From NCBI GenBank assembly GCA_044892525.1, contig CM097888.1:37758001-37822000 (forward strand): 64,000 nucleotides of DNA, written 5' to 3'. The first letter of the stretch is position 1. Each line of letters begins with the position of its first letter. The stretch is from Schmidtea polychroa (Eukaryota). The translations under genes were made by a program, and so were the position numbers. Shown one piece after another: positions 8,989 to 49,548 of the stretch. The notes below the pieces were generated by a model. That model made no database searches, had not been told where the DNA came from, and worked only from the letters and a program-made list of their open reading frames with translations.

Positions 8989-10731
8989 TCATTCATTTTG
9001 AACGTTGGTTTTCAATTCTAATTTCGTAGAAACCGTGTCATCATTTACATGAGTTGTATGAGTATGAGATGACTTTTCCGTTTTTGAGGATTTGGATAGA
9101 TTGCCAGACAGGGATACAAATGTGCTGGTAACTATTGCCCTTACACGTTTTGCCCAAACAAAACAAATCATTAAAAAAAAACCTTGAAGACTGTTAATCA
9201 TTGCTAGAATGAAGATAAGTAGGGTTATACTGGAAAGATTTGCAAATATCTGAAGCACATATCCTAATCCAAAGACCGTGGTAAGTCTGACACAAAGCCA
9301 AAGAGTTGAATTTGATTCTTTCTTTTGTACAACACGACATTCTTTTGACGTTTTTATAATCCGATAAAATACAATAACACACGAAACACTGTTCCATAAC
9401 AGTAATAGGCATACAGGTATATAGTACCAGATTAATCCACTTAGAAGATTGGTAAACCAACAGTGTTTCCCTCCATATCTCGGTCGTATTGTAGAATTAT
9501 TTGGCATCGTAAACTCTACAATTACTGACGAACAAACGATTATCGCCACACAACTGAACCCAGTTATACAATAACAACAAAATGTTTTCCAAGTTTTCTT
9601 TTTCCCCATATTCGTGGATCGAAATCCAAATGTTTGCAACAAATCTAGAGCATATACCGCCATCCAGACAAACGTACTAAGACTGACAAATTGATGAGAT
9701 ATAGCTATATATAAACAGGCGGAGGATGTTACAACACGGTTATTTGAGACCAACAAAACGAAAAAATTTGACAACCAAAGACATATACTTAAACAGACGG
9801 TAAGGTAACCTCCAAAATTTCGAAAAATACTTTGAGTCGTGTAGAGAATGATTAACATGAATAAGCAAACCATTGATAAACAAGTAAAGATAAATGAAAA
9901 AGTATCTATAATAAAATATACAATTGGGTCACTGTATGTAACATTTTTATTTGTAAGATTTAGATGAGGAGCCGGCTTATTTTGGGATTCATCTTCCCAT
10001 TCTGCAAAATTTAGGCTAAATGAAAATGCACTGCTTGCAACATCTAACAATTGTGGTAATTGTGTAAAACAAGATATATTTCTACAATTGCAACAATGAT
10101 AATTTTTATAAAATTTCCTTCCGTCAGAAACTATCTCCAAATTTCCATTTAAACACATATCGGATACATTATCAAACCTTTTCAGCAGAGTTCTCGGACA
10201 CAATCGGGTAAGATTTCTGAAACAAATTCTTTGAAAGTCTGGATCTATCACTGGGGAAATCGAACAACTGTAAGGAGATTTGATCATTATGTCATTTACT
10301 TGTTTACCATTGGTGATATTGTGATCCAAACAAGAAATAGATAAACTAAAGTATTTGTATCGTTTGATATTGTTGCACTTGGCACAATAGTAATTCTCGT
10401 AAATTAATTTATTTTCCCCCATCACAGCTGCATAGGATTTTATTGGTAATTTTGTATCTATCAATTCTTTTGTGCAATATTTGGAATAATAATGATTCTC
10501 ATTGACACATTTATCAATAACCCATATCCTTTCATAGGAATTCTTTGGAAACTCTTTACAACTGGAAATACTTTCTAGACTTCCAGTTTGTTGAAATTTC
10601 TCATGACCGGGACAACAATCACCGAATTTGTCGCAGATTTCATCACACTGACAATACGGATCGGATTTTCTACAATTTTCTGCGCATTGACTCAGGTAAA
10701 ATATCAAAAAAATAGACAAAAGAAAAATCAT
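8989..10731 (-). CDS. Intronless SMB-domain class-B-like (secretin/adhesion/Methuselah-like) 7TM GPCR, copy 1, ~580 aa
   Basis: Signal peptide MIFLLSIFLIFYLSQC (first ATG 10731; track start 10776 is TTG), SMB-like CQCDEICDKFGDCC, Cys-rich ectodomain, seven hydrophobic helices, TM3 FVWM, ECL2 GGKHCWF and TM7 NSLQGFF typical of 7tm_2. Confidence 0.92.
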   Translation of the reverse strand: MIFLLSIFLIFYLSQCAENCRKSDPYCQCDEICDKFGDCCPGHEKFQQTGSLESISSCKEFPKNSYERIWVIDKCVNENHYYSKYCTKELIDTKLPIKSYAAVMGENKLIYENYYCAKCNNIKRYKYFSLSISCLDHNITNGKQVNDIMIKSPYSCSISPVIDPDFQRICFRNLTRLCPRTLLKRFDNVSDMCLNGNLEIVSDGRKFYKNYHCCNCRNISCFTQLPQLLDVASSAFSFSLNFAEWEDESQNKPAPHLNLTNKNVTYSDPIVYFIIDTFSFIFTCLSMVCLFMLIILYTTQSIFRNFGGYLTVCLSICLWLSNFFVLLVSNNRVVTSSACLYIAISHQFVSLSTFVWMAVYALDLLQTFGFRSTNMGKKKTWKTFCCYCITGFSCVAIIVCSSVIVEFTMPNNSTIRPRYGGKHCWFTNLLSGLIWYYIPVCLLLLWNSVSCVIVFYRIIKTSKECRVVQKKESNSTLWLCVRLTTVFGLGYVLQIFANLSSITLLIFILAMINSLQGFFLMICFVWAKRVRAIVTSTFVSLSGNLSKSSKTEKSSHTHTTHVNDDTVSTKLELKTNVQNE

Positions 10732-12305
10732 TGACGATAAATTGAAAAGGAAATTATCAACTAAAATAAATGCCAAGGAAAATATTTATTTTGACATTGC
10801 CTCTTTAGGATTTTCCCATAATTGGAATTGATAATTGCACTATTTATCGATTGAAATTGCTGCGCTGTTTTTGATCGCACTTGGGCTGACTGAAATGTAA
10901 ATAATTTCCCAGATCAAACACTGGTAGATAAAGGGAAAATATTTCCCAATTCTCTGTGCTTGATTGGTATCAACTATAGACAAATCATTAACAATTTCCA
11001 AAAGAAATTTAATCATGTTTATTTATAATTTTTGCATTCAAACTGTTCAACAAGAAATCAACTTTCTAAAATTTATTTAAATTTTTATTAAAATTACACT
11101 AGATTTCCTATTCATTAAAATGGCAAAAAAAAATTTAATTAAATATACCATGTTTCTCCTAATAAAAAACCGTCAGACAATATAAGCTCCATTTTTATTC
11201 CAATGACAAAATATGAAGAATCTGATAATATTATTTCTAATTAATTAATTAATTAATAAATTAAAAAAATAATAAATCTGGGGAAAATTCAAGATTTTTG
11301 TAAGCTTGAGAAATATAATTTATTTTAACATAGCAATAAACTACTACTAAACTATATGAGAGAATAAATGAAATTAAATATCAATTAATTTTATAAAAAA
11401 TTATAAAATTAAATAATAGAAAAACAATCAGTTTTTGAATTTTAATAAATAAATATTTATTATCTTTACTTATTTACTTATAATAAAGAGCGAAAATATG
11501 TAATTAAATATAATTAAATAAATAATTAAAAGAATGTATGTTGTGTATTGATGTGGTAGAAAAACTCTATGCTTACATCATTCTAAGTTGAACAAAAGTC
11601 CTCGTGGAGATTTGTTTGAATATTACAAACAAATTGTTTTTATTAGAATTAAATAAATATTTTGTAAATTTAAGTATTGATGTTATAAATATTAAAAGTA
11701 TTACAACAAATAGAAACCGAAATAATTAAATTAGTAAGAAATCAGCAATTTAAACAAAATTAACCAAATTAATATAATTTATAGGCATATAATATTAATG
11801 TTACTTAATCAATTTTTTTTATTATATTCATTATTTGGTCGAAATTTGAATTTATAATTAAAATTTATTATTTAATACCAATATTTTGCGGCCTATAATA
11901 ATAATGTTGAATTTTCGATTTTTCTTAACTTAAGTTGAATAATTTTATTTTTGAGATAAGGTCGAAAACTTTGTTTTTAATTTTCTTTTTAATTTAATCA
12001 TTTAAATTGTTAAAAAAAACTATAATTATAAATTGTTTAAGTTTGTTTAAATTTCATTGGATACACGTCTGAGTATGATTGCTTTACTCTATTTCGAAAT
12101 CGCTGATTGGTTATTATATTATATTTATTCAAAAGACAACAATTCCGAAAATAAATAGATTTAAAATTTTTAATAATTTGGAGTAATAATAAAATAAAAT
12201 AACTTAAAAAGATGATAATAATATTTATTAATTATGCATAAAGAAAAATTAATTCTAACAAATTCAGTTATGTTTTAGGAAATATTTCTCATGATTTTAA
12301 TGGTT

Positions 12306-14033
12306 TTAATCAGCCATGTTAATTACGGTTTTCATTGATTTATTTGTTTTGTATTTGTCAACAGTTTCATTAGATTTGGAAAAGGAATCGGCAAATGAAG
12401 TAAGCACATCAACGAATATAATCCGTACTTTTTTTGGCCAAACGAAACAACAGGTTAGTAAACAACCCTGTAAACAAATAACAAGGGACCCAAATACTAT
12501 CAGCGGTCGATAATTAGTTAGGATGGCTATTATTTGAAATATATATCCGAATCCAAAAACCGCCGTAAGTCGAACGCAAAGCCACAAAATGGAATTTGAA
12601 TGGTCATTTGAAACTAATTGACATTCTTTTGACGTTTTAATTATTCGATAAAATACAAAAACGCAAGATCCAAAATTCCATAATAGCAAAAAACAAACTG
12701 GAATGAAATACCAAACCATTCCTCCAAGTTTATTTGTAAACCAACAATGACTTCCTCCATAATTCGGCCGTATGGTATAGTTCGTTGCTAAAGTAAATTC
12801 CAGTATAGTTGACAGTGTAACTATTAAACCAGAACAACTAAACCCAACTAAACAATAAAAACAAAAAGTTTTCCATGTCTTCTTTTTTCTAGAATTGACA
12901 GATTTCACACCAAAAGTCTGCAGCAAATCTAATGCATATATTGCCATCCAAATGAAATTGCATATGGAAATAAAATGCTGGAATATCCCCAAGTATTGGC
13001 AGAATGACGAATCCACAATGTTAGGATTTTGAACCAGCAGCGTGCAAAAATTAATCAACCAAAGACAAATACTCAGACATATTGTAAGGTATCCTCCAAA
13101 GTTATGAAATACTTTTTGCGTTATATAAAGAACAATCAAAACAGTCAAAGAAATCATTGATAAACATGTAAATATAAATGAAGTATAGTAAACAAAATAT
13201 TTCACGTTCTTTGATTCAATTGCGTAATCAGAATATGTCGTATTTACTTCCGGTATAAAAGCATCTCCATCTTCCGGTTCCATCCAATCATTGAAATTGA
13301 GTAGATATGAAAAGGTTGACATATCTAAAATGGAAGTCTGTTTCATGACTTGTAAAAGTCTACACTGGATCCTCCAACATTCACAGCAGAATTTATTTCT
13401 ATACAACGTTTGCCCATGAACTTCAAAGCTTTCAGGTCCATTTTTGCATTTATCTGTTATATTTTCCCCGAAATTCACAAAAGAATTTGAACAGAAATCT
13501 ATCAGTTTTGTTTTGCATGTTCTTTTTATATTATTTTCAATTTCCGGCTGTATTTCACACAGATCTTTATACTTCAGAATCGCTTGATTGGCCTCATAAA
13601 TGTCGGTAATATTCACATCCGGACAGCTAATGGAAATATTTAAGTAACTATAATTGTCTTCATTGTTGCAAATGGCGCAAAAAGAATTTTCATAAATAAC
13701 CCCATTGTCATTGATTACTGGGATAAAAGATTTGACAGGAACTTTAGAAAAAATTACCTCTTTACTGCACAATTTCGACAGAAAATGTTTATTGTTATTT
13801 TTGCATTTGTCAACGACATACATACTTTCAGCAATTGAAGGTTTGGATAATTTGCATTTTATAATGTTTTGCAAACTTCCGGGTTTGTTGAAAGATCCAT
13901 GACCGGAACAACAGTCACCATACAAGGTACATTTATCATCACAGTTGCAATATTCACTGTTCTTTTTGCATTTATCTGCAAATCCAACAATGGAACCGAA
14001 AAATAGAATTGTAATAGAAGATAAAAAAACCAT
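12306..14033 (-). CDS. Intronless SMB-domain class-B-like GPCR, copy 2, 575 aa
   Basis: Signal peptide, CNCDDKCTLYGDCC, FIWM, GGSHCWF and CLQG; paralog of copy 1. Confidence 0.92.
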   Translation of the reverse strand: MVFLSSITILFFGSIVGFADKCKKNSEYCNCDDKCTLYGDCCSGHGSFNKPGSLQNIIKCKLSKPSIAESMYVVDKCKNNNKHFLSKLCSKEVIFSKVPVKSFIPVINDNGVIYENSFCAICNNEDNYSYLNISISCPDVNITDIYEANQAILKYKDLCEIQPEIENNIKRTCKTKLIDFCSNSFVNFGENITDKCKNGPESFEVHGQTLYRNKFCCECWRIQCRLLQVMKQTSILDMSTFSYLLNFNDWMEPEDGDAFIPEVNTTYSDYAIESKNVKYFVYYTSFIFTCLSMISLTVLIVLYITQKVFHNFGGYLTICLSICLWLINFCTLLVQNPNIVDSSFCQYLGIFQHFISICNFIWMAIYALDLLQTFGVKSVNSRKKKTWKTFCFYCLVGFSCSGLIVTLSTILEFTLATNYTIRPNYGGSHCWFTNKLGGMVWYFIPVCFLLLWNFGSCVFVFYRIIKTSKECQLVSNDHSNSILWLCVRLTAVFGFGYIFQIIAILTNYRPLIVFGSLVICLQGCLLTCCFVWPKKVRIIFVDVLTSFADSFSKSNETVDKYKTNKSMKTVINMAD

Positions 14034-14903: not shown

Positions 14904-16813
14904 CAGTAGATTTCGTTTATAGAGAACTTGCTTAAAGAGAACAAAATCGGTTAAAGAGAATTTTTTGGTTTAAAAACGGCATTTACCCCAATTTTTCAGT
15001 GTAAATGTTCTCTTTAACCGATGATTGGTTAAAGAGAACATTTTTTTATTTTTTTATTTTTTCGAAATACAGTTTATTTTAGACAGTAAACATATAATTT
15101 AATTATTTTTGTTTTAAAAAGGTAATTGATTAAATGGTAACCTGATTAAAGGTTATTTGATTAATTGAAAATATTATTTTACTTAAAAATTTTAGGCCAT
15201 AATGAAATCAAGTTCTAGGACAATTCTAACACTCAAACAGAAATTTGAAATCATAGCACTTTTTGAGAAAGGAGAAAGCCAAGTATCATTGGCCAGAAAA
15301 TATAAAATATCACCTTCATCAATATCAAACATTTGTCACAAGAAAAGGGAAGAAATACTTGAGGCCTACAGTTCCAGGCCTTCATCAACCAAGAAACTGA
15401 AACAATCTTTTCATGATGATCTAGATATTCAGTTAAGGGATTGGTATTCGCTGCAACGATCCAGAAAGATTCCCATCAACAGTGTATTACTTATTGAAAA
15501 AGCTGATCAAATTGCCAAATACCTAAAGATTCAAGATTTTACTTGCACAATGAGTTGGATCCAACGTTTTAAAACTCGGCATTCTCTTGTTTTCGGATCT
15601 ATTTCTGGAGAAGCTGGTGATGTAAATAATGAGTTGGTGGCGTCGTGGCTTAAAAATGAGTGGCTGGAAATTAGGAAAGGTTATGGTAACAAAGATATTT
15701 TTAATGCAGACGAAACGGGATTATTTTACAGGCTTTTACCAAATAAAACAATTAAGGTTAAAGGAGAAAGATGCGTTGGAGGTCAGTTATCTAAGGATAG
15801 GATAACTTTGTTATTTTGTGCAAGTATGGAAGGTGAAAAATTGCCTCCATTAATAATTGGAAAATCAAAAAATCCCCGATGTTTTAAAAATGTTGATATT
15901 ACTTCCCTAAATTATAAAAACAATCAGAATGCATGGATGACTTCAATACTTTTTTCAAATTGGATTGTGTCATGGGATTCTAAATTAAGAAGTATTGGAA
16001 GAAATATTATTTTATTAGTAGATAATTGTTCTTCCCATCCTCCGTTAGGTCAATCTTTAACAAATATTGATCTAATTTTTATGCCTCCAAATACCACAAG
16101 TAAGTTACAGCCTTTAGATGTCGGGGTTATCAATGCTTTTAAGCAGTATTATAAAAAAGGAATTGTTACAAAAATGATTCATTTTTATGATTCTTATCCA
16201 GAAGAAAAATTTAAAGTAAGTATTCTTGATGCAATTAGTATGGCTAAAACGGCTTGGTCAAAAGTTAGCTGTAATACTATAAAAAATTGTTTTAGGCATT
16301 CTGGTTTCGGCGAAGTGGTTGAAGGAATGGCAATAAATGAAAAATTTTCACCTGATATAGAGGAATATTTTGAAAAGCAACACTCGTTTACTGATTTTGT
16401 TAATGCTGAAGAAAATTTAGTAACAGAAAATGTAACTGAACAGGAAGTAGAATTAAATTTGTCGCTATCTGATACGTCAGATAACAATCAATGTGTTGAG
16501 CTTCCCAACATTCATAAAGCATTTGAGTGCATGCAACAAGTAGTTCTTTTTTATTCAAATCAGGATAAAACTATCCATTTACAAGAAAGTTTAATAGCAA
16601 TTGAATCAGATTTGGAGAAGATTTTACTCAAGAAAAAAACCAGGCAACGGAAAATAACTGAGTTTATTTTCAAAAAATAAATGTGTTAGTTAGTAAAATT
16701 TTTTGAATATTTTTAAAATTATCCTTATTAAAAGTATCGGTTATAGAGAAGTATCGGTTATAGAGAACATTTTTTCAAGTCCCAAAAATGTTCTCTTTAA
16801 GGGGTATCTACTG
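14904..16813 (+). mobile_element. Complete Tigger/pogo (Tc1-mariner superfamily) transposon, 1910 bp
   Basis: 24-bp TIRs CAGTAGAT...AGAGAAC (19/24 match), TA on both sides (14902-14903, 16814-16815), and repeated subterminal GGTTA(A/T)AGAGAA sites. Confidence 0.95.
15202..16680 (+). CDS. Tigger/pogo transposase (CENP-B-type HTH + DDE_1), 492 aa
   Basis: N-terminal HTH LTLKQKFEII, WIQRFKTRH, and the catalytic triad in FNADETGLF / LLVDNCSSH / LQPLDVGVI. Confidence 0.95.
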   Translation: MKSSSRTILTLKQKFEIIALFEKGESQVSLARKYKISPSSISNICHKKREEILEAYSSRPSSTKKLKQSFHDDLDIQLRDWYSLQRSRKIPINSVLLIEKADQIAKYLKIQDFTCTMSWIQRFKTRHSLVFGSISGEAGDVNNELVASWLKNEWLEIRKGYGNKDIFNADETGLFYRLLPNKTIKVKGERCVGGQLSKDRITLLFCASMEGEKLPPLIIGKSKNPRCFKNVDITSLNYKNNQNAWMTSILFSNWIVSWDSKLRSIGRNIILLVDNCSSHPPLGQSLTNIDLIFMPPNTTSKLQPLDVGVINAFKQYYKKGIVTKMIHFYDSYPEEKFKVSILDAISMAKTAWSKVSCNTIKNCFRHSGFGEVVEGMAINEKFSPDIEEYFEKQHSFTDFVNAEENLVTENVTEQEVELNLSLSDTSDNNQCVELPNIHKAFECMQQVVLFYSNQDKTIHLQESLIAIESDLEKILLKKKTRQRKITEFIFKK

Positions 16814-19774: not shown

Positions 19775-19924
19775 NNNNNNNNNNNNNNNNNNNNNNNNNN
19801 NNNNNNNNNNNNNNNNNNNNNNNNNNNNNNNNNNNNNNNNNNNNNNNNNNNNNNNNNNNNNNNNNNNNNNNNNNNNNNNNNNNNNNNNNNNNNNNNNNNN
19901 NNNNNNNNNNNNNNNNNNNNNNNN
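19775..19924. other. Assembly gap (N)
   Basis: N run. Confidence 1.
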
Positions 19925-20081
19925 TTATTTCTGACAGACTGACAGTTTATCCTTAAAAATTAAATAATTATTTAACAAACTAAATGAACAAATATTCAAA
20001 ATTTGTGTCATTATTATTAAAGTAAATAAACTCATTATTATTTGAATTTCATTTTTTATTATACTTTGACAAAAAATTCCA

Positions 20082-21767: not shown

Positions 21768-21919
21768 TATAATTCAATGAAAGCTCTATAATTGCAAAAT
21801 AGACAAAGGCAACAATTTCTTTAACATTTTCATATTTTTAACTGAAAAATTTAATTATTTATATAAATTGATTAGTTTATAAATAAAATTTTAAAAGTAC
21901 ATTTTGTAGCAAATGATTT

Positions 21920-29620: not shown

Positions 29621-29643
29621 AATATGAAGAGCCATCTGGGCTG

Positions 29644-37206: not shown

Positions 37207-37538
37207 TGATCGATTGTGAATTATTTGTGATCTGGGTTCAATTTATTTGTTTAAATTAGCAAGTTGTGTAATGAATTATTTGATAGGCTGATAAAGTTGT
37301 CACAGGATTTGTCTGTTACAGAAAATAGAAATTAAATATGATTTATAGAAATTTATTATGCAAACAGAATGAGATGTGGAACATTAATTAATCTTACTGA
37401 TATCGAAGAATAATAATCTGCGCCGAATTAATTTGATATCCGTTGCGTTTATCTTGAATTTAATTATTCCCTGTTCTCTCATATTACAAATATATTTAAA
37501 CAAAATAACAAAGTTTTGTACAATTACAGTGTATTTCT
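37207..37538. repeat. 5' flank of GPCR copy 5, near-identical to 49549-49880 (5' flank of copy 6)
   Basis: 332-bp colinear match with only a few substitutions. A second, more diverged block matches about 37560-37740 vs 50260-50435. Confidence 0.95.
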
Positions 37539-38399
37539 CTAAATATTATTTCTAAAAAATTTATTCTTTGGTTTTCTCAGATTCTTAGATTCTTATTCAT
37601 ATTTAAATTAGACTACGAAAAGACTTCGCATTGGAAGATCATTGGTCCTATTTGGACATTCACATTTTCAACAATATCAAATCTAAATTCATTGACTGCC
37701 TCGGTGCAGTGATTATTTAAATTGTTTATTAATTTGTATAATGACAACTTATAATGACAATCGGGTGTGCAAATAATGCAAAATTAGAAAATAAATATTA
37801 TTTAATAAGTGTTACATATGGTGGGTTACAGGTAATCCACATCTTACCCTTTCTTAGCCAATCCTGAGTTGCTTAAAAAGAAAATTTGAGTTTATTTTTG
37901 GTTATGACGAGACATTTTTAGATTTCCGTTTGAACTCTAACAGCAAACCTTTGTGTGTTCTTTTTGCTTATGTAAATTCAATGGTAGTTATTAGCTTGTC
38001 AACTATTAATGTTACTTGCATGGGTCAATTTTAATGATAATTCTATGAAATGTTTAGTGCTTATCCTGCTAAATCGAAATCAAGTTTAAATATGGACCAA
38101 TGTGTGAATTCTTGAAGCATTAGAATGTTGAAAATATGCACATGAAATTAATTAAGTTCATAACTATCTTTAAAAAGAACCCCCAATTATTGGACAGATG
38201 AAATATATTTCAAGATCATTTCAAGACAATTTTGCTATAACTAAATGAACTGTCGCCTCTTTCAAACTAAACGGATCGTTTGATAAAGATAACCATCATA
38301 ACTATGAAAGATGACTTTAATTATCATTTGTAAATATTTTGAATTATCAATTGTGACAATTACAATAAACCACACGAACTATGGTTAATCTCGTTTACC

Positions 38400-39370
38400 T
38401 AACGCACAGTCTTCCTACGGTCACTAATAGTGACTCACTATCAAGTATCATTTGGTTAATTGTGGAAATCCTAAAGGGGAAGATTAGTCGGGACTGTATA
38501 AATGTTTTATATGCATATATTTTCTGTGCAGGATGTAGGTCGGATTCGAAAGGTTTTGTTGCGTCTCTTATTGCCTTATTTAATATGTTGTCGATATTGT
38601 AAATCCCTTTTTCGTGTAAGTTACTGCCTAAATATCTATAAAGGTTATTCTCATCAACTATAGGTATTTTTCATTGTATATTGTTAGTATTTTGTTATTA
38701 TTTTTTTATTTAGTCTAAAGTATCCACATTTACTTGGGCAAAATACTAGTCCTGCTATTTCTGTATGCTTTATTATGTCGCTTAGCATGTTTTCTATGTC
38801 TTGTCTAGAATTTTATAGAAGTACAATGTTATCAGCGTAGGCAATAATACTGAAATTACATCCGTTAATTATAAATGGACGTTTGCTTAATATGTCTTTA
38901 ATTAAAAAATCAATTGTCAGTCAAAATATGGTCGGGACATGGGGCATACATTATTTATTTTTATGCTATCTGTTTTGTTTCCTTTTTTTCATTTTTTCCG
39001 TCGCATTCATTGTATATAGTTTGTATGAGTTCTAATGTGTTTTTGTGAATGCCTATTTTGTGTTATGTATCCTATAGTAATTTAATCTTACCAAATGCGT
39101 CAGTTAGACCTAGCTAAATGATATATATATCTATTTTTGTTCTGATGGCTCTTTCTTCTACTAGTGTTAATAATGTGTTGTGTTCAGAGCAGCCATCAGG
39201 TGTACATATTGCTTTCTGGTTGTTGCTAAGTAAATTTCCTAGTCTTATCCATTTGAGGAGTCTATTGTTTATAATGACGGAAAAAATATGTATGATGTGT
39301 ATAGCATTGCTAGTGGTTTCTATGAAGATATCTCATGGGTAATTTCTTCCTTACTGGGTTTAACGATAAG
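38400..39370 (-). mobile_element. Non-LTR retrotransposon RT relic of the RLE (R2/NeSL/Utopia-like) group
   Basis: Ordered minus-strand motifs KPLAML, QKA...DGCSEHN, LTDAFG, CPMS, IIAYADNIVL, GLVFCPSKC, YRYLG and LHPAQKI...FIQSRLIF, with stops and frameshifts. Confidence 0.8.
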
Positions 39371-40266
39371 TTTTGTTTTGTATAATTCTGTTATGTATTT
39401 ATGTTGTATTTGAGTTTGCTTCGTGTATTACTTCTTGCTTTTGTTTGATTTTTCTTTAAATTTGGGGTTATTACTTTGGTATTATGTGGATTCAATTAAT
39501 TATGTTTATTTGGTGTTTTAACGTGTTTCTAATTTAGTTGGACTTACTACTATGTTTGCGTGTTATGTTACTACGCATTTCGTCACGTTACTTATGCATG
39601 GGACTAGAGTAAGTTTTTGCCCAATACATATCATTTTGTAGAAGTTTAATAATATAAAATATCAAAATACCATGTTGTTGGACACACATTTACAAGTGAA
39701 AAAAATTATATATGGTTAAAATCTGTCAAGCAGATCATTTGAAAATTATTAAAAATTGAAGGCAATAGATAAAAGTTTTTAGTTCTATCAGTAGTAAAAA
39801 TAAAGAAATTGAAAAAAATATAAATTTTGCAATATTATATAAAGTGCAAGTTGACATTAATAAATTGGAGTGCGAAAGATTTCCTTTTAAACGAGTTTTA
39901 GATCGGTTGAATTTAAAGAAAAATCTCCCTTGTTCAATTAATATAATTGAATCACAAATGTAATAGTTGCTATAATATTAGTAATATTTCATCATGAAAC
40001 TGAGTAATGTAATTTAGTTATAAGATATTTTTAAAAAAAATTATGTATGACCTTAACTTGTTTAACTCAAGTAATTAAGTATATTAAAAATGCTACACAT
40101 TTCATTCGGAAATAATATCATTGTCACTTTAGCATTGGTTAAGAAGTAATCAATTTATTTTATCTGACTATTTTATTCTTGAAATATTTTGAATTTACTA
40201 ATGAAAATCTGTTAAATAATTAATAAATATTATAAATTGAAGTATTAAATCGCAGTTCTTATAATT

Positions 40267-43200
40267 ATGGTAAATTTATTGGATGAATCTCCTATAAATC
40301 AAGCAATTGATGCCGTTGTTAAACTTGCTAAAAATATTATAAATGATGAGAACTCCGAATCAAAAAGAAAAGTTGAAAGAGATTTTAAATCTTGGGAATC
40401 ATCAGATTCAAAAGAAAATGACTTGTTTAATGATAAAATATTCCGGTAAATTTATTTCATTTATTTTCAAAAGTACTTATAATTTTGACGGGTGAATAGT
40501 TCAAAATCTTTATCAAAAATTCTATTATTGGCATCTAATATAAATCACTGTATATTACTTGTGTCATTATTAATCAGTCATATAAAGCGGTAAATATTTT
40601 ATTATCTAAATATGATTGGATGTTATTGGAAGCGTGCATCTGTATTTAACGGTTTGCAAAATTTAACATTCACATAAAATTTTCGTCAAAACTGAAGTAT
40701 ATCCTGCAACCTATTTAAAATTAAATTAATCACCTTTAAAAATCGTATTTACATATTATACAAAATGCTTCACAATTAGAGCTGTGATTATTTAAATTAA
40801 ATTATATTCGGTTCGAAATCTAGAATATAAAATTCTAACTCATTAAAATTTATGATTTATATATTATAAAATATTAATGATAGAAAGTAAAATCGGTCAT
40901 TTTGACTGGTCTGGTAGTTCTAGTATTAAAAGACATTTTTAAAATGGTTTCTAAAATGAAAAATGTCAATATATATTGACTCACGCAAATGGTTTACACC
41001 AGAAACCACTCAGATACGTTTCCAATAATATAAGAAAAAAATTAATAATCTTACATCATAGAAACATACATACTTACTTTCACTCTAATATTCTCATTGA
41101 TAGTGCAATAAGATACGCCTTACACTATCGAAATCTAAAATGTTGTAGAAAAATAAATACTGCACACAACCACAACACATTCTACAAAACACATGCAAAC
41201 TCTATATATAGAAATGCGCCGCTGAGATACGTTTATAATAACTTTATTTTAGACAATTTTGAAAATATAAAAGATTGTTGAAAATGTTTTTAAATGTATT
41301 TTTAAAGAAACTACGTTAAATTATCATGAGAATGACGAAATATCATTGTAAGAATTATTTGAGTTAAAATTAAGTTAAATATTCATTAGAATTTCTGATT
41401 TGTTTTAGAAATGTTTTAGAAAAATACATCGTTGTTGATTGAACTATCAATTGATTTAATTATTTAATTATTATTAAAAATATATCTGACTTACATTATA
41501 TCAAAATAATTATAAAATAATTATAAAATAAATTTCATAAAATTCCTAAAAAACTTGAAAATTAATTAAAACTAATTTATAATACAAATGTTGACTAAAA
41601 GTAATATTTAAGAACTTGAATAATGATCTCATATATGGATCAAAATTCAAACCTTAAAATTAAACATCTGATATGAAAGCTATTTCTAATGACAAATGAA
41701 ATTCATTAAATTGGTGAGTCACCCATTGTAGACCAATTGGTTTACGCACCAACCACCACTATAGAAAATGTTATTATTATTTTATATTATAGAGTATTTT
41801 TTATCAAATGCAACACGATGTACTAAAAAATACATGTAAACTTTCCATAAGTAGAAATAGTTCACGGCAAAAAAACTTTTCAAAAATTGTATTATTTAGG
41901 AAAATGACAGATTAAAATTAAGAATTCATAGACACTGCTGAACTCAATTTAAAAAATATGAGTTGTTGGAAAATTAAAGAAAAAACAGTAAATTATGGAG
42001 CAAAATTTCATTTTAAATGGTTATTGTAATGTATTGTATTATTTTATTTGTCGGTTGTTTTTGTTATATGTAAATTACAATCTCGCACGTCGATATCGTT
42101 AATGAAACAGTTTACGTATGAATTGTGTATTCTCGATCAAACTTTCAATTAATCCTTATCAAATAACCGGAACATTCGATCAAACTTTCACTTAATCCTT
42201 TCAGAATAACTTTCAGAAAAAAAAGAAAATAATAAAATAATATAGTATAACGAACCAATTAATTATTACAACTTTTATTAAATATAAAATTAACTAATTA
42301 AACAACCTGGTTATTATTTCTTTTTCATGGTTTCGAAAGTTCGAAACTCAAATAAATTTCACGGCACACCATTGTGCCGCGGCACACAGTTTGGACAACA
42401 CTGCACTAATGTCTAATTAAAATTAAATATTTCTCAAAACAAATTATATATTTTTTAATGTAATGAATACTATTTAAAATTCTATTTTTTTTCTTACTGA
42501 AAATATCGCAACGATATAATTAACATGAATGGAAAATGGAACAGAATGGAAAAAATTTATTTTTTTTTCAAAAAAAATGTGTTTTGAAAATTAGATTTTA
42601 AAAAATAAATTTACAAAAACAAACTAAGTGGAAAATCACTTTTCGATTTTAGGACCCATTTAGAGTGGCGCCCCTATGCCGAATTTTGTGCTTCAAAATA
42701 TTTGTTTAATATCCCTTTAAATTCTAGCAATTTTTATCAAATTATAGTCTAAACAATAGTTACAAGCAAATTCGATGTATTTAAATTTTGTATTTAACCT
42801 TAATCTTAATATTTTTTTTATTTTTTAGTGCTTGTTACATTGTTCACCTCTACAGCAGAAGAATCGGTTGCTTTTATAATTTATTGAATTCTTTTAAATT
42901 AAATGGAAATATTAATAATTATATTCGAACAGTAAATTATTAAAAATTTTTGAATTTAAATTCTTATTTATTAATTTTGCTAGTGCGAAAAAGTGACCAG
43001 TATTGGTTGCGGTGCAGCTCCAGAAATTTTGTCCTATTTACATTACGTTCGTTTTAAATTGAAATGTAATACTTTGAACTTGAAATTTATTGGGTACGAT
43101 TCAATCATAAATTGGGATACCTACATTGATGTAATGAAACAAAATCTTGACAAACGAACTACTTTCGAATTCAAAGTTTGTTTCTATATTTTAATTTTCA

Positions 43201-45395
43201 TGTAGATGTATGATGCAATTGCAATGGGAAATTAAATTACTTGACCTATATTCTATAATAAATAGTTAAAGAGTAAATTATTAAAAATTTTTGAATTTAA
43301 ATTCTTTTTTTAATTATAAGTAAACGGCAATCGTTCTTTTCACGCTATATTTCGACAGTTTTCCTGTTATCATCAGGTAGGATATAATAACTATTTAAAT
43401 TAAGGATATTAAACAAATTTATTAATTTTATTAATTATATAAAAATTTTTTTTTATTTAATAAAAACATTTCATTCTTTTTAAAATTTATAATTAAAATA
43501 ATATATTATTTTTAAAATTTTAGCATTTATAATTTAATTTAATAACTTAAAATTTGTTTAATTAATTATTTAATTTGACAAACACCAATCAATACGTACA
43601 ATATTCAAAAAAATATTTAAAAACATTTAAAACACAGGTATTCACTGCATTATGTACATTAATTTTCGGATTCAATGACTTTATCAACAACGCCTCACAA
43701 ATTACACGTTCCCAATAATTATCGAAATTTTAAAATCAGACATACCTATTTTACTCTTACAGCACTTATTGTGCTCACTAATATTGGTCAAAATCTTCGG
43801 TCTTTAATGCTCTCAGGCTCGAACACAGAGATGACGGGAAGTAACTCCAAATTACACCCATTATATGTAAACTGATAGACGAGATCGGAACATAATTCGA
43901 TCGGAGTTTTAGACTTATTAATGAACATATTGCGTACTTTCCATGAAGTTGACACTATCCCATAGTTGAAATTTCCTAACTACTTTCTTATCTTATTATC
44001 TTATTCTTATTTTATATGCCTAGAGATTGATCATTAATAAATATTCATAGCCAGTGTTCTTATAAAACAAAGTCTCTTATTCATTCACATATTGTGTAAT
44101 ACAGGTCAATGTAGGAAAATTAATTATTACTAATAGATAAATGCTCAATTTCAGGATTCTGTATTCGATAAGTTCGAAGATGAGAATAAAGGAAGTGACT
44201 ACAAAAATTAGTAATTTTTTAGTCAAAATATTTTAAATTTTGATGGAAATGTAGCAATTTTTATAATAACTATTGAATAAAACCTAAGAAAATATAAAAT
44301 TTTATTTCAACCAAATGTTTGCATTTTCAGTCAAATAAAATGAATAAATTTAATTCACTTTTCACAAATTCTAAATAAATAACAAATTTCTGAAAATCTG
44401 ATTTTCAAATTCACACGGTCTTTTGAGCTCTTTAGTTCGTTAGTTATCTTAGGGAATTTTCTCTTTTATTCGGGTTTTTATTTTCACTACGTAAACTACA
44501 TTGTCCAATAAATTTGTACTTTTAATTCAACAATTTTGAAAAAATGACTTTCATTTTTCTATCTAATGATGATTAAATGGATTTATAAAATTTTAATTAA
44601 ATTATGTTTTTAAATCTGCACCTTCTAAGAATCCCTTTTCAATTTGAAAATATTTTTATACATTTATTTTTTTGTTTCCAATTTATTCCAGTTTATACTA
44701 TAAAATATGGTTAAAATTCAGTCTGTAATCCAATTAATTACTTTTTGATTAATATAAAGTGATGATTTCTTGGTAACAGCATTAATTAAATTTTAAACAA
44801 TTAAATGATAATTTTCGGCTATACGATATGAAATTGACAAGGATTATATATTATTTGCATCAAAAGGTTTAAATTATCATTTAATTGTTTATTACTTTTT
44901 GATTAATTCGATTAAATCTTTTGATTAAACTGAAAAACATTTGAAAAAAGCATTGCCAAAAATTTGTTACAAAGGGAAAATAAGTTTATAGTAATGAAAA
45001 TAAATTTATAAATTAAATGAATTTCTTTATGATTTTATGTATTTAATAACAAATTTTATTATGTAATAATGACAGAAATTCAAATTTAATAGCATTCTTA
45101 AATTTTATTAATCATTTAATTACAAAAATATTTTCATTTTCATTTGTAGAATGAAACTGTTAATATCACTACTCTTCGGAATATGAGAAAAGGAGGGGTT
45201 TGTTTAATGTCATTCTTTCACTTCAAAGATTTTCCTAACATTTGGAAACTTTTGAAAAGTCATTTTGAATTGGTTATAGTTCTTGATGTCAAAAGTGCAA
45301 ACTTTCGGTCCGTAATGCGGGGACGCGGTTATTCAATTATTAATTTTAAAGATGGGATTCAAGAGAAATATTTCTATTATTTCTATCGGTTTTAG
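40267..45395 (+). CDS. Predicted multi-exon class-I SAM-dependent methyltransferase-like gene (copy A; one junction unresolved, possibly a pseudogene)
   Basis: GT-AG, phase-compatible exons 40267-40445, 42829-42931 and 42984-43175, then probably about 43206-43264, 43321-43376 and 45150-45395. Motifs VTSIGCGAAPE (motif I), FIGYD...W (II) and MRKGGVCLM (VI-like). Confidence 0.65.
40997..41772 (-). mobile_element. Second, inverted copy of the TA-flanked TIR element at 14542-17350 (no Tigger; one end lost)
   Basis: Starts TA|CACCAGAAACCACTCAGATACG. Its reverse complement aligns to 14560-14903 joined to 16814-17350. Confidence 0.75.
42355..42403 (-). mobile_element. Solo terminus of a Buster/Charlie-type hAT element
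   Basis: Reverse complement CAGTGTTGTCCAAACTGTGTGCCGCGGCACAATGGTGTGCCG is a typical Buster end; no partner end was found. Confidence 0.5.
43435..43726 (-). repeat. Dispersed repeat, inverted homolog of about 29690-29975
   Basis: Shares GGATTCAATGACTTTATCAACAACGCCTCACAAAT, the spacer and the adjoining AT-rich tract. Confidence 0.85.
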
Positions 45396-45991
45396 TTAAT
45401 ATCTTTTATATAACTTATTCTTTTTAACATTCAAATTGAACTTCTCTACATTCAAATGAATAATAAACTGTAATGTGACTTTATATTGCAATTTGGATTT
45501 TAGTAGAATTTTTATTATAAATATAAAATTCAATTTTTTTAGAGAGCGTAATAAATCATTAAATTTAACATATTTCACTCTACATAGTGCCAGTGACTAC
45601 CCTGGAAATAAATAAACCTTAGTTTCACGTACCCCATCTGAAATTGTATTTAATTTTAAAATATAAAAATTTCCACATTTGCAAATAATAGTTTAGATCA
45701 ATGGTCTTCAAAAGTTCGGGTTTGCAATAACTGGTTTGACGGTAGTGTGTAATTACTAGGTAGAATTAATAAAAAAAATTGTTATATGTTTATCATGGTA
45801 GTGTAGATTTGGTGGCCACTTGCATCCCATATTTTGCCTTAATAGTTTTTACTTTTAAAGCCACCACTCACTGGCTTATCCTTCTGGTTTGGAAACCATA
45901 ATTATTAATTTTCCCTCTATTTTGTAATAAATTCATAATTGTGTCGAGAACATTTTTGTACCGGTAAACCAGATTTTGATTAATTTTTAAT

Positions 45992-47100
45992 TTATACTGG
46001 CACGTTGACGTCAGTCCCTAGAGGGTCTGGATTGATAATAATAATGGATACAATTTTACCTTAACGATCATTGACTTGTATACAAAATATGCATCGGTAA
46101 TACGGCTGTAATTATTAGAAATGATTTTGAAGACTTGTTTGAGAATTCATTGAATTTTCATTCTCCACCAAAAAAGCGTTATACTGATAATGTCTAAGAA
46201 TTTTATAACAAAATATTCAAAGAGTTTTTTGATAATAATGAAATTGAAATTTACTCAACCTGATGAATGAAGTCAAGGTCCTTGACATATTCCTTTTATA
46301 GAGCGATTTAATAGAACATTGAAAAGATGATGTATAAAACATAAAATGAAATCGAGCGAAGGCAAGGCCCTATTGTTAAGTCGATTGAAAGAGCTAATAA
46401 AACTCAATGTCAGCGGAAAATTGCCTGATAACTCAATACCAATATTATTAACCCTACACTGCACAAATTTTTATTTTTAGTTATCAATTATGTAAGTATA
46501 TGTAAATTTATGCAAGGAATACGGGAAAAGGAATTTTAAAAATCCAATTTAGCTTTGGGGCACGGCTTCCTCTGATGAAAAAACGACTTATTTTTGATTT
46601 TGAATGTAATACGTATTTAACAATGTGTAAATTTGAAGTTATAACAAGAAAAAAATATATGCGTCACTGTTTAGTATAGGGTTATAGACTGATTTTATAA
46701 AAATTTATAATATAACCTTATAGATAACAAAAGATGATGAAGGTAATTGTACTTAAGCAATATATTACCTGCTAAAGATTATAGTGTTAAAACATATGAA
46801 CTTACTTCGGGTTTAAAGTTAAAATAGAAGGTAAAGGAGATACAATTTCAGGTGCAGATATTAAAAAAATATTTGGAAATAGCCAAAGCTAGCACTGTGA
46901 AGTATATACGAGAGTTAAAAGTAATTCATGTTGCTCCAGCTGTGAAAGAAGTAAATCAAAGACAAGGTCTTAGTGAGTTAGACGAAAAGACAACGCGTGG
47001 ATTATGAAACATCACGCACTTTTTACCTGATAATCCAATTGAACTTTTTATTGAATTGTTGAAGCTGCTAAGGGCATCGAACAATTTGAATGGGGAATTT
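45992..47100 (+). mobile_element. Polinton/Maverick-type retroviral-like integrase relic
   Basis: WHVD, NNGYNFTLTIIDLYTKYA, PKKRYTD..EFYNKIFKEFF..NEIEIYST and IERFNRTLK in order (45992-46330). LPDNPIEL at about 47023 resembles a Polinton ORF C-terminal motif (weaker). Confidence 0.7.
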
Positions 47101-47844
47101 TATTAAATAGCACTCTTCATTAAGTTGATATTTTTATTACATGGTTTATTGTATCTTTTTATCTAATGTATTTCTTGGATATAATAATAAACTTAAAAAA
47201 TTAAATAACAAAATATTAAATAATAATATTAAAAATATTGGTTTAAATAAAAATAATAAAAAAACAAAATAAATAAAATTAATAATCAAAGAATTTACTA
47301 AAAAAATATTAAATATTAAAATTATTAATAAACTTAATTAAATATAAATAAATCTTAAAAATTTCGACAAACTTTTATAAAAACAAAATGAACTTTAAAC
47401 TTTCGTTAATTACATATTAAACAAAATATTTTTAAATGCGCGCAAAAACCAATACACATTTGAAAAATTTTTTTTTTGAATAACATGGATTAAAAAAACC
47501 CAAAAAGTACTCATTTAAACCTTTCAAATTCCTACTAAAATGAACCTACAAATACACTTTACATATGATTCAATGTTGCTGTAGAATAAATCAAGTATAT
47601 GGGCACCAAATAATATTGGATTTTTTCATTTTGATATGATAATTATTTAATACAATTTTTAAAATAGAATGTTACAGTTTGAAAAATTTATTTTAATTTA
47701 CTCAAAATAATGACTTAAAACAAAATAATTATAAAAGTAATGAAATATAAATATAATATTCTCACCAAAATGAAAAATACGAATGATAACGCATAATAAT
47801 AATTCAAAGGTCAATAAGAAATAAAGTAAATGTTTCTTTTAAAA

Positions 47845-49548
47845 TTATATTATTTCATTTTTTAACAGAAGATCCAATACATTCTGTTTATCATTTGGAT
47901 GGGTCTTCTCTGACTTCTGGGTGGGTCTATTCGCACTTGATGACTTGGATATACTTTCCGTAATTATTGACAGTCTGTTCCTTAATTGAGAACGAGCGCG
48001 TTTTGTACAAACAAAACAAAGAGTCAATAAAAATCCTTGAAGACAATTTAACATCGAACCTAAATTTATCAAAATCTTGAGTTGTGTAAATATTGAGATA
48101 ATTTGCAATACATAACCAATGCCAAATACTGCCGTAAGTCTTACACAAAGGCACAAAGTTGAATTCGAGTTTCTCGTCTTCACCATTCTGCATTCTTTGG
48201 CAGTTTTGAATAGTTGATAAAACACAAATCCACATGTGATTAAATTCCACAATAATAACAAACAAACGGGAATGAAATACCATACCAACCCTCCAACCTC
48301 ACTAGTAAACCAACAATGCTGTCCTCCATACCTTGGTCTAAGCGATGAATTAGTTTTATCAAAATATTCAGTTACTACAGAAATTCCCACAACGGAACCA
48401 GAAACACCAAATACACATATAAAATATATGCAAAATGTCTTCCAACCTTTATTCTTGTTAATGCTTGCTGACTTTGTGCCGAAGGTTTGTAACAGATCCA
48501 AGGCGTAAACAGCCATCCAAACGAAAGTACTCAGAGCAACAAAATGATGGAATATTGCCAAATACTTACACGAGGTTGATTTGACAATTTGAGTGTTGGT
48601 TACCAATAAACTCATGAAATTGATCAACCAAAGACAAATACTCAAACAAACGGTTAAGTAGCCTCCGAAATTCCTAAAGACCTGATGAGTTAAATATAAT
48701 ATAACCAAAAAGAGTAAAGATATTAATGATACACAAGTGAAAATAAATGAGATGTGGTATGTTATCGTTCCTGCCATATCTGTCTCAAAGGTAGAATTTG
48801 ATGTGTAATTATTGTAATTTAGGACAGAGGATTCCTCTTCATTCTCTCCATCTTCTTCCCACTCCTTATAATTTAGTAAGTAGCCAAATTCATTAAAGCT
48901 AAATGGAATTTTTATCACAGGTAAGGATGCATTTCTTTCAATATCAGAACAATTTTTAATATCACAATTATAAATATCTTGAGGATGATCGTCATTTGGG
49001 GAGGAGATGTTTGAAAAATCATTTGTTCTAATCATACAATTCCTTTGTAACCCTTTTTCAAAATATGGTAAAACTTTATACAATTTTGAGATTTGTTTCA
49101 TCACAGTTTTATTCTCAATTTTATCTTTATCAAACGGAAGAATTAAATCTTCAATTTTCACTTGCAAATACGTAAAATGAATTTCTTCATTACATTTAGC
49201 ACAGAATAGATTCCCATAGATAATCTTTATATTCGAAATCACTGGGATCCAGGATTTGAGATGATTTTTGGGATTGAATATATTTCTTTTGCATAAATCA
49301 GAGAGAGGATGATTGGGATTATTGCATTTATTAATTATCCACATAGCTGATGGGAATAACTTGTTGAATGGTTTGCATGACAAAACATTTCTAAGTAATC
49401 CCGGCTTACCGTGATCCGGATGGCCATAACAACAATCGCCATATAGAGAACATTGAGGATCTGAATGACATATTTGATCAATTTGTAAACCAGAGTAACT
49501 TGATTTCATTGATGAAAATAAAATTATCCATATTGATAAAGTATTCAT
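47845..49548 (-). CDS. Intronless SMB-like class-B GPCR, copy 6, 567 aa
   Basis: ATG start, signal peptide and 7TM; closest to copy 5. Confidence 0.92.
   Translation of the reverse strand: MNTLSIWIILFSSMKSSYSGLQIDQICHSDPQCSLYGDCCYGHPDHGKPGLLRNVLSCKPFNKLFPSAMWIINKCNNPNHPLSDLCKRNIFNPKNHLKSWIPVISNIKIIYGNLFCAKCNEEIHFTYLQVKIEDLILPFDKDKIENKTVMKQISKLYKVLPYFEKGLQRNCMIRTNDFSNISSPNDDHPQDIYNCDIKNCSDIERNASLPVIKIPFSFNEFGYLLNYKEWEEDGENEEESSVLNYNNYTSNSTFETDMAGTITYHISFIFTCVSLISLLFLVILYLTHQVFRNFGGYLTVCLSICLWLINFMSLLVTNTQIVKSTSCKYLAIFHHFVALSTFVWMAVYALDLLQTFGTKSASINKNKGWKTFCIYFICVFGVSGSVVGISVVTEYFDKTNSSLRPRYGGQHCWFTSEVGGLVWYFIPVCLLLLWNLITCGFVFYQLFKTAKECRMVKTRNSNSTLCLCVRLTAVFGIGYVLQIISIFTQLKILINLGSMLNCLQGFLLTLCFVCTKRARSQLRNRLSIITESISKSSSANRPTQKSEKTHPNDKQNVLDLLLKNEII

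Follow-up and report, generated by a model that had tools for sequence, protein, structure and literature searches.

The locus and its transcripts

The window, which is the whole 64,000-nucleotide stretch of Schmidtea polychroa DNA analyzed here (64 kb), contains six uninterrupted open reading frames (ORFs) of 561–595 aa, named g1 to g6. Five were listed on the minus strand (g1, 8989-10776; g2, 12306-14033; g4, 25477-27204; g5, 35521-37206; g6, 47845-49548) and one on the plus strand (g3, 20082-21767). The pairwise identity among the six copies was 35–90%, and a tblastn search of the window with three of the six ORFs returned the same six places and no extra fragments. The TTG starts listed for g1 and g4 come from the bacterial ORF finder and are artefacts; the first ATG is at 10731 in g1 and at 27195 in g4. 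The runs of N in the window (19775-19924, 21920-22248, 34102-34408, 34589-34777, and 50936-51106) were all outside the ORFs, so no reading frame rests on an assembly gap. The sole inverted copy, g3, lies alone on a 1,995-bp piece (19925-21919), isolated by the assembly gaps upstream (19775-19924) and downstream (21920-22248) of it; given these flanking gaps, the orientation and exact position of g3 may have been set by scaffolding. The six intact single-ORF paralogs announced in the preliminary description, five minus and one plus, were thus recovered from the ORF list and by tblastn, with the plus-strand copy being gap-flanked.

These six genes are real, intact, and expressed at least in part. 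The RNA of g1 is unspliced and polyadenylated: an RNA-type contig of 1,774 nt was gapless and colinear with 8937-10710, RNA contigs were colinear over 8937-10867, and a contig from run X6 (8738-9145) was extended by 19 T absent from the genome, which read as A on the minus strand. The 3′ UTR of g1 extends over 8738-8988 (minus strand), poly(A) being added near 8738. Clear transcription was observed for g1, and only traces for g2, in the form of weak RNA patches at 12868-13831. The intronless state that had been proposed for all copies was observed directly in g1; the other five, g2–g6, are probably intronless too, judging from the end-to-end alignment of their open ORFs.

Counterparts of the PARF1 receptors

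The sequences P0001, P0002, and P0004 were letter-for-letter identical to the published PSMD005966B, PSMD033258, and PSMD005966A, which are labelled PARF1, a planarian receptor family published in 2011 (PMC3261222). Judged by sequence, the six genes are the S. polychroa counterparts of this known S. mediterranea family, and the family is not new. When compared by region, g1, g2, and g4 were 75–87% identical to PSMD005966A, PSMD005966B, and PSMD033258, respectively; the likeness of g3 to PSMD005966C (supplement 23 of PMC3261222) and of g5/g6 to PSMD038514 was judged by reading the published sequences. The architecture is common to both species, and the g1-g2-g3 neighbourhood is as in the published contig mk4.005966. 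The existence of an S. mediterranea counterpart for each copy implies that most of the duplications are older than the species split. A count over the 781-Mb genome returned six close copies, all in this cluster, and the nearest matches bearing a non-planarian species name were at most 25% identical, in agreement with the lineage-specific family by local duplication that had been suggested.

The coding sequence of g1 (8989-10731, minus strand, first ATG to stop) is the orthologue of PSMD005966A: the two (g1 and P0004) were paired in the region trees with support 99/98-99 and an identity of 75–76%. It contains a six-Cys knot resembling somatomedin B (SMB), whose end is at 10612-10647, the motif FSFSLNFAEW (9997-10032), and the 7tm_2 core (9175-9903). 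Gene g2 (12306-14033, minus strand), orthologue of PSMD005966B (84% identical) and forming a starred pair with P0001 in the region trees, has its knot at 13908-13943, the motif STFSYLLNFNDW at 13284-13319, and 7tm_2 at 12459-13193; its YxNxxC[AC]xC modules begin at aa 114 and aa 211. The most divergent copy, g3 (20082-21767, plus strand), carries the motif FSYSLNFNEW at 20766-20801 and 7tm_2 at 20907-21614.

In gene g4 (25477-27195, minus strand), orthologue of PSMD033258/014465A-C, four Cys are left of the knot (27076-27117) and the two YxNxxC[AC]xC modules are present; the motif SHFSYLLDFNKW is at 26464-26499 and 7tm_2 at 25621-26355. Gene g5 (35521-37206, minus strand), of the PSMD038514 type, has lost the second Cys module and carries FSYLFNYDKW at 36526-36561 and 7tm_2 at 35695-36429. 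Its recent duplicate or conversion partner, g6 (47845-49548, minus strand; 90% aa identity to g5), has lost two more ectodomain Cys and carries FGYLLNYKEW at 48859-48894 and 7tm_2 at 48028-48756.

Receptor architecture and mosaic ectodomains

Each copy was found to combine an N-terminus of hydrophobic character with a Cys-rich ectodomain and a 7tm_2 core, in line with the preliminary description. Pfam 7tm_2 matched all six with 39–55 bits (gathering score 20.6; E 1e-10 to 1e-15). A profile search of PDB sequences returned, at E ≤ 0.001, adhesion GPCRs only (ADGRE1 at 4e-14, then ADGRG2 and ADGRE5). The seven-helix (7TM) part of the AlphaFold model used for g2 (ma08cc4854599) gave structural matches of up to Z 28, with an rmsd of 2.3–2.9 over approximately 265 residues, and the top VIA and Foldseek matches were adhesion GPCRs. 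The class-B hallmarks are invariant in the six copies, namely the TM3-ECL2 Cys pair (C345, C430-W431) and the L-Q-G of TM7, and TM6 has a Tyr in place of the toggle Trp. The lack of a GPS in any copy was borne out, since the Pfam scan of the six copies had no match to GPS/GAIN at E ≤ 0.1 and the string C-x-C-x-H-[LIMV]-[ST] or H-[LM]-[ST] was absent from all of them. The class B1 secretin receptors were also considered and rejected, HRM having no match at E ≤ 0.1 in the six copies.

The proposed SMB-like knot stood in part. Five of the six copies matched Somatomedin_B below its gathering score (14–20 bits against 23.1; E 1e-3 to 5e-2), and g2 had no match to it at E ≤ 0.1; the knot is degenerate, with six of the eight canonical Cys kept in g1–g3 and four in g4–g6. 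ESM-atlas clusters with DUF8401 (PF28443), SMB, and 7tm_2 matched model residues 5-564 and 19-263, the shape match of the g2 model to DUF8401 clusters extending over residues 19-263. PF28443 was not found in the six copies by the local Pfam scan, and was precomputed on P0002 (the g4 orthologue) but not on P0001, P0003, or P0004. The ectodomain has approximately 220 residues, with the Y-x-N-x-x-C-[AC]-x-C module occurring once or twice, and is modelled here as a degenerate somatomedin-B knot followed by a putative DUF8401. A GAIN domain has about 320 aa.

Among 61 wider relatives, 7tm_2 was found in 60, SMB in 30 (up to E 5e-19), and GPS or GAIN in none. Receptors of the SMB-DUF8401-7tm_2 type occur in other animals too, including Nematostella (the NvX cluster, e.g., A7SFI6), molluscs, and arthropods; they have a like domain order without GPS/GAIN, and share the Y-x-N-x-x-C-A-x-C-N modules and an S-[FY]-S-[IL]-L-L-D-F-N motif with PARF1, but at just 20–25% identity. 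Most of them have 700–950 aa, the full eight-Cys SMB, and an extra module of 4–6 Cys between the motif and TM1, compared to which PARF1 has been shortened and its SMB has decayed. The solved 7TM cores closest in both sequence and structure are those of canonical adhesion GPCRs (ADGRE1, ADGRG2, ADGRD1, ADGRL, ADGRF1), and the hydrophobic x-x-F-S-x-L-L before TM1 of PARF1 resembles their T-x-F-x-x-L-M; in contrast to them, PARF1 lacks the GAIN domain, the GPS Cys box, and the H-L/T cleavage site, and differs in its small ectodomain and the Tyr of TM6. By description only, PARF1 can be likened to the adhesion GPCRs of amphioxus that bear Kringle and Somatomedin B domains (Nordström et al., 2008; PMC2246102); their expansion is also lineage-specific and has an N-terminal SMB on an adhesion-type receptor, but belongs to another lineage and includes Kringle domains. 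The data supported the description of the six proteins as GPS-less, SMB-type class-B (adhesion-like) receptors, locally duplicated and planarian-restricted.

A mosaic structure was observed in g4, g5, and g6. Their N-terminus and 7TM were 94–96% identical (dS 0.05–0.08), whereas the middle ectodomain showed an aa identity of 28–32% (dS 1.4–2.1). The variable cassette of g4 (26394-26802, minus strand) lies between the blastn blocks 25487-26393 and 26803-27186; it could not be aligned with g5 or g6 as DNA, while its flanks were 94–95% identical; g5 and g4 have an almost identical N-terminus and 7TM and a different cassette. The g5/g6-type cassette is present in S. mediterranea PSMD038514, and the two genes share a nucleotide block (47684-49889 in g6, 35327-37547 in g5) at 92%. 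With the DNA compared within S. polychroa, this mosaic is consistent with an old variable cassette whose surroundings have undergone gene conversion. The middle region was 15–35% identical between old paralogs. The dN/dS was 0.11–0.40 in the 7TM and 0.3–0.5 in the ectodomain, none being above 1, and 0.53 for the middle region of g5 and g6. On sequence grounds, the g4/g5/g6 mosaic is new beyond PMC3261222, a paper in which neither this pattern nor the Stachel-like motif was reported, and which did not give the intron state of PARF1 or assign DUF8401.

The segment before TM1 and the readings of the cluster

An S-T-F-S-Y-L-L-N-F motif before TM1 was conserved in all six copies and in the wider family. 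The consensus of the segment is x-x-F-S-Y-L-L-(N/D)-F-x-x-W, with 24–36 Cys-free residues to TM1, and in the AlphaFold model the motif is an island of pLDDT 81 amid disordered linkers. The adhesion GPCR chains starting at the tethered agonist aligned from model residue 237-240 (21 of 21, over 95–97% of residues), and those lacking the agonist from residue 274-280 (9 of 9); this overlay was made with one model, built from 38 sequences. The motif resembles the Stachel of adhesion GPCRs, and a role as tethered agonist is a hypothesis suggested by this model, possibly a new point. The strict Stachel pattern was present in g2 and g4 only and in 6 of 157 relatives; the other copies have a looser motif, with a Ser at the key Leu position in g1 and g3. 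These deviations, and the Tyr in place of the TM6 toggle Trp, speak against the agonist hypothesis.

It is an evenly balanced possibility that these proteins are ordinary ligand-gated class-B receptors, in which FSYLLNF..W would be the last strand of DUF8401 and its pocket position a prediction artefact. Longer relatives have the same motif 90–160 residues and 4–6 Cys away from TM1, before the extra module, and DUF8401 proteins that stand alone, with no 7TM, align across the motif-bearing stretch, for which reason the motif may be a structural strand of that domain. The scarcity of the strict pattern and a poor first, shallow model agree with this. On the other hand, the motif was kept in g5 and g6 despite the loss of a Cys module and of up to eight ectodomain Cys, the linkers flanking it in PARF1 are Cys-free and of low confidence, and in the model the motif coincides with the tethered agonist in all 21 agonist-containing structures, which were released after the AlphaFold2 training cut-off. 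A tentative case can be made that PARF1, perhaps together with the whole SMB-DUF8401-7tm_2 clade, keeps a Stachel-type agonist without GAIN or autoproteolysis.

The preliminary description had attributed the cluster to a retroposed founder and its expansion into a family for chemosensory, host-cue, or non-self recognition; applied here, the retroposition would have taken place in planarians. The single ORFs, the colinear g1 RNA, the tandem arrangement, the fast-evolving middle ectodomain, and the restriction to planarians above 25% identity, among matches with a species name, agree with it. Nevertheless, every one of the more distant paralogs in the S. polychroa genome was a single ORF, no multi-exon parent gene was found in that genome, and members of the same architecture in a bivalve and a gastropod were also single-exon; retroposition in planarians is unsupported because of these mollusc relatives, and intron loss, if any, is probably older than planarians. 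PROF1, another flatworm GPCR family, likewise seems exclusively intronless (Zamanian, 2011; PMC3261222). Survival of a poly(A) remnant or a target-site duplication is unlikely at saturated dS, the ectodomain dN/dS is not above 1, and the literature searched contained nothing on chemosensory, host-cue, or non-self roles, so this origin and function are improbable. Membership of the Methuselah/Mth-like family is less probable still: neighbours in the AlphaFold DB are named “G-coupled receptor Mth-like 1” or “Mth2”, and some homology to Methuselah has been noted for the related NvX receptors (Zamanian, 2011; PMC3261222), but those names are automatic annotations, Methuselah_N was absent from the six copies (E ≤ 0.1) and from the 61 relatives (E ≤ 0.01), and the ectodomain is of the putative SMB-DUF8401 type. 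Decay of some or all copies into pseudogenes, with frames still open by chance, is very unlikely. The Cys lost in g5 and g6, their middle dN/dS, and solid RNA support for g1 only would agree with decay; against this, all six copies keep a frame of about 1.7 kb open at a genomic GC of 25–30%, where stop codons are frequent, the 7TM is under constraint, and the cassette type of g5/g6 is also conserved in S. mediterranea.

The preferred reading, with a probability of about 0.8, is that the six genes are functional and unspliced and encode orphan cell-surface receptors of the PARF1 family. Types g1, g2, g3, and g4/g5 would derive from old tandem duplications (dS saturated) preceding the split of S. 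polychroa and S. mediterranea, g5 and g6 would be young duplicates, and conversion would hold the N-terminus and 7TM of g4, g5, and g6 near-identical while the divergent old middle cassette stays. Each protein would start with a signal-type N-terminus, followed by the degenerate knot of somatomedin-B type, a Cys-rich DUF8401 ectodomain, and an adhesion-type seven-helix core. The variable ectodomain would bind an extracellular partner and the conserved 7TM would signal through G proteins; the literature searched contained no ligand, G-protein coupling, or phenotype for any PARF1 member. Autoproteolysis would not occur, since both GAIN and GPS are lacking, and the membrane-proximal segment might, most plausibly though still doubtfully, occupy the orthosteric pocket as a plug or as a built-in agonist that is not cleaved. 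If true, the agonist element of adhesion GPCRs could exist and work apart from the GAIN cage, and in PARF1 a small Cys-rich ectodomain would gate the agonist, with the middle cassette diversifying while conversion freezes the signalling core.

The receptor array and its identity with PARF1

Six single-ORF receptor genes (g1 to g6) were located in this AT-rich DNA (GC 20–34%): g1 at 8989-10776, g2 at 12306-14033, g4 at 25477-27204, g5 at 35521-37206 and g6 at 47845-49548, all on the minus strand, and g3 at 20082-21767, the sole plus-strand copy. For g1 and g4, the TTG start codons in the ORF list were artefacts of the bacterial ORF finder, and the first ATG codons lie at 10731 and 27195, respectively. 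When three of the genes were used as tblastn queries, exactly six places in the window were matched (35–90% identity), with no fragments beyond the six ORFs. The ORF calls and tblastn thus agreed with the five minus-strand copies and one plus-strand copy of the preliminary description, the strand of g3 being read on a gap-flanked piece. The N runs, all assembly gaps (19775-19924, 21920-22248, 34102-34408, 34589-34777 and 50936-51106), fell outside the ORFs, so no reading frame is gap-dependent. Since g3 is the only gene on a 1,995-bp piece flanked by two gaps, its inverted orientation may be a scaffolding choice.

In the Pfam scan, 7tm_2 was above the cut-off in all of the copies (E 1e-10 to 1e-15), Somatomedin_B (SMB) matches were sub-threshold in five of the six and no such match was obtained for g2 at E <= 0.1. 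GPS, GAIN, HRM and Methuselah_N were matched by none of the six, and the string C-x-C-x-H-L-S/T was absent from every copy; the claimed lack of a GPS was therefore confirmed by both searches. Hydrophobic N-termini suggest putative signal peptides in g1 to g6.

Transposable elements were also found around the array. An intact 760-aa ORF at 2102-4384 (minus strand) gave a Pfam match to the hAT C-terminal dimerisation domain (E 1e-4) and was assigned to a hAT-type transposase. A pogo/Tigger-type transposase (DDE_1 E 1.5e-43, CENP-B_N, HTH_Tnp_Tc5) was located between g2 and g3 at 15202-16680 (plus strand), and a partial copy of 881 bp at 60049-60929 (plus strand) was 98.5% identical to it, which indicates recent activity of this DNA transposon. 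At 62332-63899 (plus strand), overlapping ORFs with a gag-like CCHC zinc knuckle, followed by a second frame, probably represent the 5' portion of an LTR retroelement extending past the window.

The six genes are the published planarian family PARF1 (Zamanian et al., 2011; PMC3261222) seen in a sister species, and the array alone adds little to it. A protein search with g2 as query returned five proteins (P0001 to P0005), of which P0001, P0002 and P0004 are the S. mediterranea members PSMD005966B, PSMD033258 and PSMD005966A, respectively, in the published sequence supplement. The identity between g2 and PSMD005966B was 84%. In region trees g1 paired with PSMD005966A and g2 with PSMD005966B, both starred, and g4 adjoined PSMD033258; by reading the published sequences (PMC3261222), g3 was likened to PSMD005966C and g5/g6 to PSMD038514. 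Orthologue identity between the copies of the two species was 75–87%, the level that marks the window as coming from a sister species. PARF1 entries A and B bear the contig name mk4.005966 and entry C the same number (PMC3261222), in agreement with the adjacency of g1, g2 and g3 in the window. No PARF1 orthologue exists in schistosomes (Zamanian et al., 2011; PMC3261222), which limits the family as a drug target. A literature search for DUF8401, PARF1 function and planarian SMB receptors gave nothing beyond PMC3261222, and the novelty of the present analysis is limited to the mosaic/conversion pattern, the assignment to DUF8401 and the Stachel-like segment. The chemosensory claim made for the array lacks support.

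In a profile search of the whole S. polychroa genome, g1 to g6 were recovered at E <= 1e-139; as these six strong matches all lie in the window, the core PARF1 family is confined to this locus. A distant full-length relative at C2:111417874-111419568 (minus strand, E 9e-54) has a 589-aa open frame 23% identical to g2 and possibly corresponds to PSMD001641, an outlying member of the published set. Two further groups of single-ORF adhesion-like GPCRs, arranged in tandem at C2:120.43-120.57 Mb and C3:43.08-43.17 Mb, matched the PARF1 profile in the 7TM part only (E 1e-41 to 1e-22); one comprises three copies whose open frames measure 893, 461 and 893 aa, and the other at least five copies of 727–773 aa, some with stops. 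By this genome-wide count the close copies were the six described here, the rest being distant or 7TM-only. The preliminary interpretation was borne out in part, as regards a local expansion of GPS-less receptors of SMB type that is restricted to one lineage.

Expression was assessed in sequencing runs aligned over g1 and g2. Run X3 was DNA and gave one contig covering 8700-14159. In runs X1, X6 and X7, guessed to be RNA, the intergenic stretch was near-empty. In run X1 a single contig of 1,774 nt was colinear with 8937-10710 and a further piece reached 10867, run X7 covered 9037-10645, and a contig of run X6 started at 8738 and continued into 19 T absent from the genome, read as the poly(A) tail of a minus-strand transcript. 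These colinear RNA-type contigs and the extra T indicated that g1 mRNA is unspliced and polyadenylated. At least one copy, g1, is therefore transcribed, and g2 showed low patches only (12868-13831). Within g1 (8937-10710), the X1 and X7 contigs had 11 and 7–12 shared differences from the assembly (~0.6%), so the transcriptomes came from animals other than the one sequenced for the assembly, and g1 is polymorphic.

Wider family, 7TM core and gene structure

With 1.84 billion representatives as targets, a profile search detected 4,020 proteins (E <= 0.001), 172 of them at E <= 1e-30. Named relatives are known from Nematostella (A7SFI6), one bivalve, one gastropod and Limulus. Among 61 scanned relatives (the best-scoring 60 new hits and P0005), 7tm_2 was present in 60, Somatomedin_B in 30 (best E 5e-19) and GPS or GAIN in none, which indicates that GPS-lessness characterises an old metazoan clade and is not a planarian invention. 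ESM-atlas clusters matching the AlphaFold model of g2 carry PF28443 (DUF8401) with 7tm_2 and SMB, and these clusters and the domains of the relatives point to a PARF1 ectodomain of SMB plus DUF8401. Structure searches with the full-length model were swamped by 7TM matches and bear on the 7TM core.

The pLDDT of the g2 model was 47 with a 9-sequence alignment and 79 with a 38-sequence one. Adhesion GPCRs were the best Foldseek matches for the 7TM (TM-score by target 0.77–0.84), and VIA-align against them gave Z 28 and rmsd 2.3–2.9 over ~265 residues; in a profile search of PDB sequences, ADGRE1, ADGRG2 and ADGRE5 alone passed E <= 0.001. The TM3-ECL2 Cys pair and the TM7 L-Q-G were invariant in g1 to g6. 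The TM6 toggle Trp of the G-x-T-W motif of adhesion GPCRs and of the wider DUF8401 family is replaced in PARF1 by an invariant Tyr (Y497 in g2), also found in the S. mediterranea orthologues.

The preliminary description had derived the array from a retroposed founder. The bivalve (2,097 bp for 698 aa) and gastropod (2,901 bp for 966 aa) relatives are also single-exon, as is the 530-aa relative P0003, and the distant paralogs in the S. polychroa genome are all single ORFs, leaving planarian-specific retroposition unsupported. The gene model of the Nematostella relative spans 12.5 kb.

Mosaic history of g4, g5 and g6

Values of dS among g1, g2, g3 and g4 were saturated, so these duplications are old. 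Compared with g5/g6, g4 was 94% identical in amino acids at the N-terminus (dS 0.07–0.08) and 96% in the 7TM (dS 0.05–0.07), whereas the middle ectodomain (aa 131-262) was only 28–32% identical (dS 1.4–2.1) and gave no DNA-level alignment by blastn. The orthologues g4 and PSMD033258 were 81%, 75% and 87% identical in the N-terminus, middle and 7TM, respectively. Hence, paralogs are closer than orthologues in the flanks and the reverse is true in the middle. The g5/g6-type cassette is present in PSMD038514, by reading of the published sequence and not by a computed tree, and would thus be older than the S. polychroa/S. mediterranea split, with the flanks homogenised afterwards. The simplest reading of these comparisons, in which the DNA was that of S. 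polychroa, would be gene conversion of the g4/g5/g6 flanks, a process that would homogenise the signalling core while the old divergent ectodomain cassette persists.

The second Y-x-N-x-x-C-C-x-C module was lost from g5 and g6, whose ectodomains contain 14 and 12 Cys, respectively, against 18–21 in the other copies. Values of dN/dS among g1 to g6 were 0.11–0.40 in the 7TM and 0.2–0.5 in the middle region, with no sign of positive selection. The DNA-level duplication of g5/g6 (35327-37547 and 47684-49889, 92%) comprised the 2.2-kb gene blocks only; no large repeated unit taking in neighbouring genes was found at that level, and the intergenic 37547-47684 was not duplicated.

A candidate built-in agonist segment

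A conserved segment lies 24–36 Cys-free residues ahead of TM1 in all six copies: S-T-F-S-Y-L-L-N-F-N-D-W in g2, S-H-F-S-Y-L-L-D-F in g4, S-A-F-S-F-S-L-N-F in g1, D-S-F-S-Y-S-L-N-F in g3, L-G-F-S-Y-L-F-N-Y in g5 and N-E-F-G-Y-L-L-N-Y in g6. Its form in the wider family is [YS]-S-[FY]-S-[IL]-L-[LIM]-D-[FILM]-N, and the candidate agonist peptide (residues 239-250 of g2) is STFSYLLNFNDW. The segment resembles the Stachel core of adhesion GPCRs, T-x-F-x-x-L-M, as in T-S-F-S-I-L-M of ADGRF1.

In the g2 model, the segment forms an island of pLDDT 81 between low-confidence linkers. All 21 adhesion-GPCR chains starting at the tethered agonist (two VIA tables; among them ADGRD1 545, ADGRF1 567, GPR56 383, GPR114 227, CD97 531, ADGRL2/3/4, ADGRG4 and ADGRG6) aligned from model residue 237-240, with 95–97% of their residues aligned, whereas the agonist-less chains (9/9) aligned from residue 274-280. 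The model thus seats the segment at the agonist position. The strict Stachel pattern was matched by g2 and g4 only among the copies and by 6 of 157 relatives, an additional Cys module separates motif and TM1 in longer relatives, and stand-alone DUF8401 proteins align over the stretch holding the motif. A split-chain prediction of the 7TM (263-556) with a 37-residue segment (226-262) scored 0.15 against a mark of 0.34 and so weighs neither way. Taking this single model together with the sequence likeness, we tentatively give a chance of about three in ten that the segment could serve as a built-in agonist of PARF1 receptors.

The mosaic array would offer an example of recognition diversifying while conversion homogenises the rest, and would bear on the interpretation of arrays in other genomes. 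If the segment were indeed an agonist, the PARF1 receptors, being small, intronless and free of GAIN, would form a natural minimal system for asking whether tethered agonism depends on a GAIN domain, which adhesion-GPCR biology has yet to settle, and they could offer a first functional handle on DUF8401.
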